Source: Macrostomum lignano (taxonomy: Eukaryota). From it: a stretch of DNA of 64,000 nucleotides. A model generated the notes under the pieces. It was not told where the DNA came from and did no database searches. It saw only the letters and a list, made by a program, of their open reading frames with translations. Shown here in pieces: positions 16,032 to 35,906 of the stretch (its first letter is position 1; every line of letters starts with the position of its first letter). The stretch covers positions 620,001-684,000 of the forward strand of contig NIVC01000337.1 of assembly GCA_002269645.1 (NCBI GenBank), written 5' to 3'. A program made the position numbers and the translations under genes.

Positions 16032-19000
16032 ATGAAGCTTTTCACAGCCAGAGGCAAAGTTTTGTTGCCTCTGTTTTTACTTGTATTGCATCAAATCTTC
16101 TCTGCGGAAGCGAATCCCCTTTCTTTAGCGAGCGCAGCTTTTTCTGCTATTGCCTTGTCAGTTAGCTTTGTGTATAAAGATCAATTAAGCTGCTATTTTG
16201 CAGAGTGTTGTGGAAAACAATGGGTTGATTTCAACCATACAGGTTGGTAACTAGACCTTGCTCTTGTTAATGTTAGGCCTCATTTGACTTATTCTCACTC
16301 TTGGTCTATGCATAGGCCTGTTTTAAGATTTGTCTATTCTAATATTTTAATGACACAATTTGATACAATTAAGGCATTAAAATTTTGAACTATGTGTTTA
16401 AATTTTGTAGCCTAATATCATTATAATAGGCCTATCTTAGTTTAAAATGAAAAATAATTTTCACAATTGGCCTAACTTAATAGTAAACCCATTTTGTTAT
16501 TGGAATAACTATATAGAGAAAATACAAGCAAAAATAATAATATGCAAGTAAAATTCTATAACATATTTTCAGAATTTAAGGTTTATTTATTATAACTTAT
16601 TATAAAGACTAATGTTAACCATAGTCCCAAAGATGTTCTATGCATGCCACAAAAATATTAGAACCTGACTACTGCATGCAAAGATTATTAAAAAATCTCA
16701 TGTGCACCTACATGCCAAGAGTTTCATCTGCATTGTGCGCTATATACAAGACAATAAAAACAATTGAAAGCAAAAATATGCTTGTATTTTTTAGCACCTT
16801 GTTAAATAAAAGTAGCGAAGATTGTTTAAACAAATTAAATTCATTTTTTATACCAATCGGGTTACTTTTTTGTCTTTTATTTTGCTGCAAAGTTAAAAAA
16901 TATTAGATTACAATTATTTTTTATAAATGTTGTTACTAAAGTAATCAAAAAACAATTTAAATTAAGACATTAGGCTACCAATTACAAATTTCCATGGTCT
17001 AGCCAAATCTAAACCTATGTTTTTATTTCCAAATCCATTTTAACCATAGCTATTTACCAAATTTTTTTGTATGTGCCATTACATGCAAAGTTTCATTGCA
17101 TAAAAGCAAAAAATAAATATTCTGTCCAAAGATATAAGTAGTATAATTAGTCAAAAAGAGAAAAAAATGCAATGTCAGCACCAGCAGTCATTTTATAAAA
17201 ATTTAAGCAATTGAAGATATATTAGAACTTTTCATTTTAAAAAAAGATCAATTGTCATAATGAAGTTGTTCTCAAAAGGCTCTTGACTCAACTATCTTTA
17301 GTTTGCTTTGTTGCTCTCAGGAAGTCTATCCATGTTTGCCCCCACAGGCATTCACCTTCCAGCCACACTAACTATTGAGACATTGCTAACAAAAGAGCAG
17401 AAAAAAACCCAACTGAAGACCCCACAGAAACACAAAAAATCATACATGAATGAGAACCAGAAGAGTGAGCTCATGCCAACCTAGCACAAGGAGCCCCCTC
17501 CCCCTGAAAGACCAAGCGCTAGAAACCCTTCAATGCGCAGGTATGGTGCAGCACTGACCCCCCCCCCCCCAAGCTACACCCCTTTCCCCAGTACAGTTGC
17601 AAACCAATATTGCAAAATAAGTATCATAAATATAAATTTTCCCCAGCTGAAAAGAGCTTCCCACTTTGAACTTCCCAGTGTATATAAAATAGTATAATAG
17701 CAGTATTTAATTGTAGCAATTTTTTTATGGATAATTGACCATATTCTAGCTAGTTTTATATTGCCCTTATGCGTGACAAAACAGGCATTTTTACAGATTT
17801 TTTGTGACTTTGTGAATAACTTGATAAGATAGTCTATTTTGCTGATTGACCTACAGTCAAGCTGCCACCCAAACCTACTCCCCCCATGTCCCCTCAACCA
17901 TGAAGGATTCAAAGAGGCTCTGGCCGCCAAAGTCTATGGCCAGCCACTGATTGGCCGCCTGTCCGAGGCCGTCCAGGAGCATTGGAACAACAGGCACCCG
18001 GCCAAGGCTCTGGTGCTGTCACTGCACGGGCCCACTGGCACGGGAAAGAATTACGCAGTGCGCATCCTGGCCGATCACCTGTTCAAGCGCGGCGGTCGGA
18101 GTCGATATTTTCATTTGTTCTCGGCTACAGTGCATTTTCCTCACTCGAGGCTGCTGGACACTTACGCGGTTGGTTTGATTCGGTTTCAACTCTTTTAGTA
18201 GAGTTCATGTCAGTGCTAGAATTGATGCAGAACTTATTAGCATTAGATTCTAAACGATGAGAGAATAAGAGTCTATGACCTATGATAGACTGGGAGTCTA
18301 TGACCTATGATAGAATGGCAGTCTATGACCTATGATGGAATGGCAGTCTATGACCTATGATGAAATGGCAGTCTATGACCTATGATAGAATGGCAGTCTA
18401 TGACCTATGATAGAATGGCAGTCTATGACCTATGATAGAATGGCAGTCTATGACCTATGATAGAATGGCAGTCTATGACCTATGATAGAATGGCAGTCTA
18501 TGACCTATGATAGAATGGCAGTCTATGACGTATGATAGAATGGCAGTCTATGACGTATGATAGAATGGCAGTCTATGACCTATGATAGAATGGCAGTCTA
18601 TGACCTATGATAGAATGGCAGTCTATGACGTATGATAGAATGGCAGTCTATGACCTATGATAGAATGGAAGTCTATGACCTATGATAGAATGGCAGTCTA
18701 TGACCTATGATAGAATGGCAGTCTATGACCTATGATAGAATGGCAGTCTATGACCTATGATAGAATGGCAGTCTATGACCTATGATAGAATGGCAGTCTA
18801 TGACCTATGATAGAATGGTAGTCTTTGACTTATGGTAGAATGGTAGCCCATCACCTATAGTAGAATGATAGCATATGACCTATGATAGAGTGGTAGTTTA
18901 TAGAATAACAGTGCTGGTTCTAGTTTATGATCGAATTAAAACAGCGGTATATAAGAATAAAATTCGTCAAAATTAAGTGTTGCATGTAGAACAGAACTAC

Positions 19001-33662: not shown

Positions 33663-35906
33663 ATGCGGATTTATCTAAGGCTGCCATTGGCTTCTATTTT
33701 AGCACTGCTGAATTTGTTTTGTTATTCAAATGTTGAATCAATAGCGGGCGTAAACAAGTATCTCTTTGCAAGTGCTACCTTCCCTACTCTTATTGTGGCC
33801 GTGGGCGAGGCGCCATTTAATAATGGATTTTTTAATTGGCTTTTTGATATAATTTTCCCTGAGAGATGCTCAGGATCTTGGATAGATTTCAGTGCAGAAG
33901 GTAAGTATGTAAATGTTAAAGCTCTCCACATCTGCTCTCTTTTTAAAAAAGCCATGTACTTTAAAAATTAATTTCTAGGACCTCTTCTTAAGGTCATTTG
34001 AACATTTGAAGATTTGCACAAGCTAGTCTAATAATATCCACTTCAAAATGGAGTTAACAAATATTCAATAAACTGATTGAATTTATAGTTTATCAATGAA
34101 CAATTATGTAATAAATTAAATGAGTCAGAGTCATAAGCCTAGTTTGTAATACCCATTTATATAGAGAAAGCCAAAGTCAATAAAATAGAACTAATAATAA
34201 TCATAATATAGAAATATAATAATAATAATCAATTATGCCTGCCCTAATAGCTAGATGTGCAACTGATAGCTCAGCCACAACTGATATACTAATAAGGTAT
34301 TATGTATTATAAATTTTATTAAAATGAAACTGTCTTATATAAAAAACCAAACAGTCAAAAAAGCCTTATAGATATAGGCATATCACATTTTTGAGGAAAA
34401 AACTTACTGTATTGCATTAGCTAGGTAAATTTAGATTGTGCATATATAATATGTATATGTTCATAAGTGTAAATTATTGGCCTAAGCTATTTTAATTTAG
34501 CTTGTAATAATATCTTCCCCAAATATAGGTCTTGATTTAAAAAAATTAGGCTGTAAACTATTTTAAACTAGAAAAGAAAATGGGAATCAATGAAATTATA
34601 GAAATAGATAAGATTTTTATACATAATAAATGTCATTTTTAGAAACTAAGATATCTTATTTAAAACAAGTAACCAATATTTTCAATTATCAATCAGGCTT
34701 CAACAATGCCCTAAAGGAACGAGTCTATGGCCAGCCACTGATTGGTCTGTCAAATGCAGTTCAACAGCATTGGAGCAACAATCAACCTGCCAAAGCTTTG
34801 CTGCTATCCATGCATGGCCCACCTGGCACAGGGAAAAACTATGTGTCTGGCATTCTTATTAGGCATCTATTTATAAAAGATTCAAAAAGCAAGTTTTATC
34901 ATCTGTTCTCGGGCACTGTGCACTTTCCGCATAAAAACCAAGTGCAAACTTATAAGGTTGGTTAGTCAGTAAATTACTAATCATATTTTTTTATTTCATA
35001 AACAAAGTTTTTGCTTTCACCAAGGCTTTATTATCGGCAAATTAATAATGCAAAATAGGACCAGATCCAAGCCTGGGTTCGTGGCAACGTATCGATCTGC
35101 CCAAAATCTGTGTTCGTGTTCGATGAAGTTGACAAAATGCCCGCCACACTGCTCGACGCGCTTAAGCCATTTGTTGACTCTTACCAGCATATTGACCGAG
35201 TGGATTATCGCAGAGCGATATTCATCTTTCTAAGGTGGGACTTCAGTTTCAAATATAAATTTGCTTTAATTTCTCGTGCAATTTAATTCCTAATAAATTT
35301 AGCCTATGAATAATTTCAGCAACAGTGGAAGTGATATGATTTCTCGGTACATGCTTGCCCAGAAAAAGCTGGGCAAAGATCGCTCGGAAGTTTACAGCAA
35401 ACTTGACGACAAACTGCCATTGTATCTTTATGACGAAAGCAATGGTGCGTTCTGTTTTTCATCTACTAATAATCAATCATTACCGTGAACATCATGCATA
35501 TCGGGCCACATGAGCCCCATTTTCGAAGCCCCATAACCTCAGCAACAGGGACCGAAGTGATTCAAATATAACTTTAGCTCATTGATGCACTATGATTGCT
35601 GCAGGCCCTCTCCGCAAAAGCGACCTACTTAAACATCACCTGGTGTCCCGTTTCATCCCATTCCTACCGCTGGAGCGACTCCACGTGACCGAGTGCATCA
35701 AGGACTACCTGAAACTCCACTATCCTGACTGGCTGTACGGACCGGACTTCATCGAGCGGGTGCTGAACAAACTGGTATTCGTGCCTGAGCGGGAGAAGTT
35801 CTTCTCCAGCACCGGCTGCAAGCGAGTAGCTGATAAAGTTCAACTTCAGATGAGTATCGACGAGATGTCGGACAAGGATAAAAGGAGGAGGAGAAACGAG
35901 CTTTAG
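33663..35906 (+). CDS. TOR1A-like: Torsin-family AAA+ ATPase, copy 4 (exons 33663-33900, 34697-34956, 35059-35234, 35320-35444, 35605-35906)
   Basis: Signal peptide, [27 protein letters not shown] and TGCK. Ends in RRNEL*. Intron phases conserved. Confidence 0.93.

Follow-up and report, generated by a model that had tools for sequence, protein, structure and literature searches.

What kind of gene has been multiplied in the tandem array that occupies positions 16032–35906 on the forward strand of a 64-kb stretch of the genome of the free-living flatworm Macrostomum lignano, and have all of its copies been kept as working genes? The stretch (64,000 nucleotides of contig NIVC01000337.1, assembly GCA_002269645.1) is referred to here as the window, and positions are counted from its first letter. 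We conclude, with a probability that we put at roughly 85%, that the array consists of four paralogous, intact torsin genes that arose by old duplication within this lineage and have been held under purifying selection. The genes are called T1 to T4 in their order along the strand.

Gene models were obtained by three-frame translation and enumeration of splice sites. This yielded four genes arranged head-to-tail, with five exons apiece, which run from the ATG of T1 at 16032 to the stop codon of T4 at 35906, matching exactly the ends given in the initial annotation. All 16 introns are of the GT..AG type, their phases are 1,0,2,1 in each gene, and the exon-2 donor GTTGGT is common to the four. 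The coding sequences of T1, T2, T3, and T4 (1041, 1029, 1137, and 1101 nt, respectively) contain no internal stop. A tblastn search with the four proteins found no fifth torsin copy in the 64-kb window, and neither tblastn nor nucleotide comparison found torsin homology in the spacer between T3 and T4 (29355–31938). The initial description of four head-to-tail, five-exon, stop-free genes with identical intron phases and intact motifs was confirmed in every detail by these models. Exact-sequence look-up revealed letter-for-letter identity of T1, T2, and T4 to GenBank proteins, and T3 corresponds over most of its length to a GenBank model that is 5'-partial; the four are consecutive records on one 807-kb contig. 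The best match in the database search, at 99% identity, was likewise from M. lignano. Because the annotation of GCA_002269645.1 was derived solely from RNA sequencing and transcriptome assemblies (StringTie, TACO, TBONE, and TransDecoder) (PMC5730564), the exact agreement with GenBank supports the splice junctions and indicates that each copy has a transcript model. In GenBank and UniProt the genes go under no names but 'hypothetical protein' and 'AAA+ ATPase domain-containing protein', and an earlier UniProt entry, A0A1I8I912 (1156 aa), joins all four in one chimeric fusion. Literature searches returned no paper on torsins in Macrostomum, nothing useful on flatworm torsins, and no mention of the gene identifiers of the other assembly copies (four searched). 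The suggestion of an uncharacterized repertoire is thus correct in that the genes are unstudied, but they had already been annotated in both databases.

The claim that these are torsins was borne out by Pfam matches, by alignment to TorsinA, and by the motif columns. All four proteins match the Pfam family Torsin (PF06309) at 112.6–130.4 bits against a cut-off of 27, with expectation values (E) of 1.7e-32 to 5.4e-38 (T1, 5.4e-38; T2, 5e-37; T4, 2.6e-33). The TOR1A_C domain (PF21376) scored over the cut-off in T1 and T3 and slightly under it in T2 (21.3) and T4 (25.7). Invariant columns in the alignment of T1–T4 comprise the Walker A motif GP(T/P)GTGKN, in which Asn follows the Lys (GPTGTGKN in T1–T3, GPPGTGKN in T4), the Walker B residues F-D-E, the sensor-1 Asn, the GCK motif, and its partner Cys. 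With phmmer, T1 matched the TorsinA structures 6OIF/5J1S at E 1e-68. The two proteins aligned over TorsinA residues 64–325, and K108, E171, N208, C280, and G318-C319-K320 were all kept, with N218, C291, G331, C332, and K333 of T1 aligning to N208, C280, and 318–320 of TorsinA. The structure of the T3 type was modeled by means of P0008, a near-identical T3 orthologue of array copy B (one of the copies of the array in the assembly). The AlphaFold2 model had a predicted local distance difference test score of 90.1 and a predicted template modeling (TM) score of 0.85, and its three best matches in the PDB were all TorsinA, with TM scores of 0.76–0.82 (0.78–0.82 for 5J1S/6OIF) and E 4e-24. Torsins as a family have no arginine finger, are activated by LAP1/LULL1, and contain a Cys280/GCK redox pair (PMC4358337, PMC4999309). 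In an alignment-level comparison, a conserved Arg at the finger region was absent from T1–T4. One column of this region does hold Arg in T1 (position 264), T3, and T4; it holds Gln in T2 and W/K/Y/Q/H in other torsins, and a built-in arginine finger was rejected on the basis of this free variation.

The divergence among the copies indicates that the array is old. Pairwise protein identity is 44–55%. Synonymous differences between paralogues (pS) are 0.66–0.75 and saturated, nonsynonymous distances (dN) are 0.36–0.46, and the ratio dN/dS (omega) is at most 0.09–0.26, these values being upper bounds only because dS is saturated. Nucleotide similarity of 67–81% is confined to exons and ends at the exon borders. 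Introns and spacers of the copies share only two dispersed repeats of approximately 85 bp, and the repeats within the T1 introns are unrelated to those in the introns of the other copies. The two shared spacer repeats (15388–15473 with 30295–30384, and 25345–25426 with 32284–32364) are 82% and 91% identical and are probably fragments of mobile elements. Two elements of the initial annotation are upheld by these data: an old expansion, by the saturated synonymous sites and the lack of intron or intergenic homology; and heavily diverged proteins with unrelated introns, by the level of identity, the exon-only similarity, and the different minisatellites. Long-term purifying selection is supported by the intact open reading frames and catalytic motifs together with the low paralogue dN/dS.

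The origin of the copies was addressed by database searches and a phylogeny. When 1.84 billion cluster representatives were searched exhaustively with a profile, 1970 relatives were found, the scores of which fall sharply from 436–575 bits for M. lignano proteins to 310 bits or less for all others. Neither this nor a word-indexed search found relatives closer to the M. lignano proteins than generic torsins of protostomes or vertebrates (at most 43% identity). A neighbor-joining tree was computed from 140 sequences over 300 trimmed columns with 200 bootstraps, the 136 other torsins being 50%-identity cluster representatives plus named sequences that included vertebrate TOR1A and TOR1B. In all 200 bootstraps, T1–T4 grouped together to the exclusion of every other sequence; the stem of this clade measures 0.27 and its terminal branches 0.30–0.41, that of T3 being the longest. 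Each copy lies at distances of 0.60–0.85 from the other three and of at least 0.98 from any other sequence. The best unnamed matches (P0121, P0122, and P0124) and the named sequences from Lymnaea, Tenebrio, Watersipora, and Mytilus were all located outside the clade, inside of which the branching order is weak (T2+T3, 62%; T1+T4, 44%). The copies did not each pair with a different vertebrate subfamily, as far as a tree with TOR1A/1B and without named TOR2A/3A/4A can tell, and grouping with TOR1A or TOR1B was not seen. The exclusive clade points to an old expansion confined to the line of descent of Macrostomum, as initially proposed, and indicates that the four genes are not an orthologue set of vertebrate TOR1A/1B.

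The question of why four copies were retained turns on the differences between the proteins, which are located in the N-terminal hydrophobic domain, a Cys motif, and the C-terminal tail. Hydropathy, from which alone the N-terminal layouts were read, places a hydrophobic stretch at the N-terminus of all four proteins, followed by another in T1, T3, and T4. T1 is the most canonical copy and has a short C-terminus. The C-terminal extensions of T2–T4 are charged; that of T2 is basic and terminates in KLYL, and that of T4 matches the KDEL-type pattern for retrieval to the endoplasmic reticulum (ER). T3, the most diverged copy, shows FNEG after sensor-1, carries an insertion of 3 residues ahead of strand beta-4, and continues past GCK in a charged tail. 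The RNEL end of T4 was considered as an unusual trait and rejected as such, KDEL-like ends being found in 12 of the 136 other torsins and hence recurrent in the family. Based on these sequence differences, it is plausible that the copies are partly specialized in membrane attachment and retention, and sub- or neofunctionalization is a plausible basis for their retention. The alternative that survives best is that the four copies do not divide labor among themselves and were retained chiefly for reasons of dosage or redundancy. The identical catalytic motifs and exon structure of all four would fit such a role, and torsin paralogues have been found to be functionally redundant in human cells (PMC7175109). 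Copies retained for dosage usually stay similar, however, often by gene conversion, and here identity has dropped to 44–55% with no conversion tracts visible; furthermore, the targeting-related ends differ systematically and constraint is unequal between the copies. We therefore consider retention for dosage unlikely.

Recent constraint could be examined with the other copies of the array, which is present three times in an assembly made redundant by the DV1 karyotype with its additional large chromosomes (PMC5730564). One further copy is 99–99.9% identical to the window and split over two contigs, with T1-T2-T3 and T4 divided between NIVC01000207.1 and NIVC01000008.1; the other, on NIVC01000094.1, is 93–98% identical and keeps the order T1-T2-T3-T4. 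Divergence of NIVC01000094.1 from the window is 1.0% in exons, four-fold less than the 3.9% in introns (p = 7e-23), and 16 of 16 splice sites are kept. Intron divergence between these two contigs is 0–0.8% in the T4 region versus 2–12% in the T1–T3 region, which suggests recent exchange between copies around T4. Over the three copies, the variable codons divide into nonsynonymous and synonymous changes as 3:4 in T1 (omega ~0.2; 0.23), 6:14 in T2 (omega ~0.1; 0.12, below neutral at p = 7e-6), 14:4 in T3 (omega ~0.9), and 5:1 in T4 (omega about 1), and the ratio for T3 and T4 together differs from that for T1 and T2 (Fisher p = 0.0017). In addition, T4 on NIVC01000094.1 contains a TGG to TGA change in exon 1 that converts W73 to a stop (locus ~16440; window equivalent ~33879–33881), as a result of which the GenBank model of that copy begins in exon 2. 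Values of dN/dS near 1, which the initial annotation named as a refuting outcome, are found for recent array copies of T3 and T4 only, and not among the paralogues; they bear on the recent past.

These numbers are the core of a second alternative, in which T3, and possibly T4, is decaying and the array comprises two working torsins (T1 and T2) plus two copies with function lost or being lost. The long branch of T3 and its exon 1, which is without transcript support, could be read in the same way. Several observations argue otherwise. T3 and T4 keep full open reading frames and every catalytic residue, and 8 of 8 splice sites are preserved in both diverged copies, even though synonymous sites between the paralogues are saturated; neutral decay over that length of time would have broken all of these. 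The 260 nt of T3 exon 2, the exon with the Walker A region, are unchanged in all three copies, with the flanking introns differing by 2–4%. Of the 14 replacements in T3, 10 map to the linker of exon 4 or to the C-terminal tail, parts that are variable across the family. A confident TorsinA fold is predicted for the T3-type protein, both T3 and T4 have transcript models, and the stop affects one of three T4 copies and lies outside the window. In our reading, the data, with their small counts, reflect a relaxation of constraint in the variable parts of T3 and T4, given the threefold redundancy, and not gene loss; decay of these copies appears improbable.

The 5' end of T3 needs separate consideration. 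Its exon 1 and start codon were modeled from homology and conservation (a C..W.DFN.TG motif), and between assembly copies this exon is ten-fold less diverged than intron 1 (1/226 versus 12/286, p = 0.008). The three annotated T3 models (PAA85321.1, PAA91113.1, and PAA87993.1) are 5'-partial and all start from the codon of GQPL. This start (~27297–27299) lies 32 nt into exon 2 with no AG immediately upstream, and may mark the point at which a transcript was cut or trans-spliced. T2 and T3 share their transcriptional-unit prefix on two of the three contigs (Mlig000610 g2/g1 and Mlig030646 g1/g2), which, given the naming scheme of the annotation (PMC5730564), suggests that the two genes were assembled as one transcription unit that was then cut. 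A far-reaching reading of these features would make the array a private, functionally partitioned torsin system. T1 and T4 would be membrane-tethered, with T4 KDEL-retrieved; T2 would work without the second segment; and T3, seemingly one unit with T2, would be expressed mainly as a 5'-truncated, possibly trans-spliced mRNA lacking a signal peptide. The truncated T3 would then act as a torsin elsewhere than in the ER lumen, or as a subunit that is regulatory and not secreted, and rewiring still under way since the recent genome duplication would account for the relaxed constraint on T3 and T4. We regard this reading as improbable. That the array is an assembly artefact, in which collapsed or mis-joined haplotypes of the highly redundant and repeat-rich Mlig_3_7 assembly (PMC5730564) give false tandem copies, is ruled out because exons only 67–81% identical in otherwise unrelated surroundings cannot be haplotypes and because the order T1-T2-T3-T4 recurs on an independent contig that is 2–7% different, with T1-T2-T3 and T4 on two further contigs.

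Five points weigh against the conclusion that the array consists of four intact torsins of old, lineage-specific origin under purifying selection. First, the tree is a distance-based neighbor-joining tree without other flatworm torsins as well as without the named TOR2A, TOR3A, and TOR4A, so that it does not place the duplication node relative to the flatworm radiation. Second, omega is close to 1 for T3 and T4 among the recent copies, based on small counts (14:4 and 5:1). Third, T3 exon 1 has no transcript support. Fourth, we found no data in the literature on the expression, localization, or activity of each copy, and specialization is to that extent inferred. Fifth, most of the residues by which TorsinA contacts LULL1 through charge are not conserved in T1–T4, among them K113, E302/E303, D316, K317, and D327; E302/E303, for example, is replaced by NE, AD, KQ, and NK in T1, T2, T3, and T4, respectively. 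The contact list for this comparison was taken from PMC4999309 and mapped through the T1–T4 and T1–TorsinA alignments. Judged from these alignments, a LULL1-type partner interface of T1–T4 may differ from that of TorsinA; the lack of such residues is unsurprising at this distance and is so far uninformative on the partner.

The history of the array that we favor is as follows. The four copies arose by duplication in the Macrostomum lineage, with synonymous sites and all non-coding sequence since randomized, and purifying selection kept the copies for most of their history. By analogy to what is known of the family, each protein would enter the ER via its predicted N-terminal signal sequence, T1–T4 would work as luminal AAA+ ATPases at ER and nuclear-envelope membranes, and ATP hydrolysis, for want of an arginine finger of their own, would need a LAP1/LULL1-type partner. 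The predicted TorsinA-like second hydrophobic segment of T1 and T4, the single one of T2, the charged extensions of T2–T4, and the KDEL-like end of T4 may then distinguish the copies from each other. With the extra redundancy of three array copies, no constraint can at present be detected on T3 and T4, and elsewhere in the assembly one copy of T4 is truncated.

Comparison with known torsins places the array within an established family. Human TorsinA and TorsinB contain the same Pfam pair of Torsin and TOR1A_C, and the best matches from outside Macrostomum are named torsin-1A/1B-like. Identity of TorsinA and TorsinB to the flatworm copies is only about 34–43%, however, the flatworm copies cluster together rather than with TOR1A/TOR1B, and TorsinA lacks the charged C-terminal extensions found in T2–T4. 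The exon breaks of T1–T4 presumably coincide with those of TOR1A at the protein level (...TYK/DQ.., ..FIFLS/N.., ..NS/G.., a slash marking the break). TOR1A and TOR1B are also neighboring paralogues, and four torsins are named in the human genome. An independent invertebrate multi-copy set is found in C. elegans, which has three torsin genes (OOC-5, TOR-1, and TOR-2), one of them possibly a pseudogene (PMC3580786). The redox-sensitive Cys pair next to sensor II was established on OOC-5 and is retained in T1–T4; the nematode torsins fall elsewhere in the tree, making the four-member flatworm expansion a separate one. Drosophila dTorsin (torp4a) belongs to the same family but is single-copy and X-linked, in contrast to the four flatworm paralogues, each in three assembly copies. 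The single Drosophila torsin invoked in the initial annotation is accordingly valid as a single-copy reference, but serves only as a yardstick for what is a flatworm. Torsins are related to Clp/Hsp100 proteins, and the next-best structural matches to the T3-type model were ClpB and Skd3 NBD2 of the HCLR clade of AAA+ proteins (TM scores of 0.5–0.67, identity 16–21%). These proteins carry an arginine finger and pore loops, and the model fits TorsinA far better (E 1e-24 versus 1e-12). Database matches also included gene models with two fused torsins, from a bivalve, a frog, and a fish. Animals commonly have torsins in several copies or in tandem.

Several other features of the window were noted. 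The window is very repeat-rich, in agreement with the published repeat content of the genome (PMC5730564). A C/T-rich, strongly strand-biased segment of approximately 6.7 kb near its start has a GC skew of about -0.7 and an AT skew of about -0.68; it forms a large satellite array that is open in several forward frames as repeated 'LSVLPSLSYPLCPT' units, and these open frames are most likely repeat artefacts. The TCTA/TAGA microsatellite upstream of the torsin array (1.1 kb, translated as 'SIYLSIYL') is found again in T1 intron 3. Three long minisatellites downstream read as artefactual open reading frames ('CLSVCLSV', 'MSGGTADVRRYSRCQEVQQ', and 'HSSPLINV'). Just downstream of T4, on the opposite strand, is a stretch with a Fibrinogen_C domain (Pfam, E 2e-22) that runs upstream into a 24-bp-type repeat. 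The reading frame of an HSP70 gene (Pfam HSP70, E 2.8e-215) breaks near 51922 into two overlapping frames, with profile positions 1–459 in one frame and 470–597 in the other; this frameshift may stem from an assembly indel or a tiny intron, or the gene may be a pseudogene.

Table. Torsin genes T1–T4 and further features of the 64-kb window. N-terminal layouts are predictions from hydropathy; C-terminal lengths are counted after GCK.
Feature	Positions	Strand	Protein	GenBank record and locus	N-terminal layout	Cys motif	C-terminus
T1 torsin gene	16032-16242, 17906-18168, 19084-19259, 19786-19916, 20081-20340	+	346 aa	PAA85319.1, BOX15_Mlig029178g2	signal-type stretch plus second segment (TorsinA layout)	CxxxECC	13 residues, TorsinA-like
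T2 torsin gene	21388-21535, 22151-22410, 23224-23405, 23568-23692, 24258-24571	+	342 aa	PAA85320.1, BOX15_Mlig030646g4	single hydrophobic stretch	single Cys, no CxxxECC	31 residues
T3 torsin gene	26754-26979, 27267-27526, 28356-28540, 28639-28763, 28937-29277	+	378 aa as modeled	PAA85321.1, BOX15_Mlig030534g1 (residues 87-378; 5'-partial)	two stretches as modeled (exon 1 and start codon without transcript support)	single Cys	37 residues
T4 torsin gene	33663-33900, 34697-34956, 35059-35234, 35320-35444, 35605-35906	+	366 aa	PAA85322.1, BOX15_Mlig031962g1	signal-type stretch plus second segment	single Cys	27 residues, ending RNEL
Minisatellite, 25-bp unit x 25 (T1 intron 2)	18270-18901						
TCTA x 120 (T1 intron 3)	19282-19754						
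Minisatellites, 34-36-bp units (T2 intron 2)	22568-23074						
Minisatellite, 22-bp unit x 39 (T3-T4 spacer)	29355-30205						
Minisatellite, 25-bp unit x 21 (T3-T4 spacer)	31431-31938						
C/T-rich satellite array	2021-8726						
TCTA/TAGA microsatellite	9141-10248						
Fibrinogen_C domain	37927-38400	-					
Long minisatellite	38114-39062						
Long minisatellite	43087-44625						
Long minisatellite	48630-50164						
HSP70 gene	50486-52398	+					

The four genes are new members of a known family and leave what is known of that family unchanged, making this a resource-level observation of modest weight. To our knowledge, no AAA+ ATPases other than torsins are found in the ER lumen and nuclear envelope. 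What substrate torsins act on, and by what mechanism, is still unclear, and DYT1 dystonia results from mutation of TorsinA. With four members that arose independently, the array provides natural variation in the presumed localization parts (N-terminal hydrophobic domain, Cys motif, and C-terminal retrieval signal) around a constant catalytic core, and such variants would be usable because M. lignano is a transparent, regenerating animal capable of transgenesis. The array is also a small example of how paralogues of different age respond to a recent whole-genome duplication, with the presumably older pair T1 and T2 constrained, T3 and T4 apparently drifting, and one T4 copy truncated.

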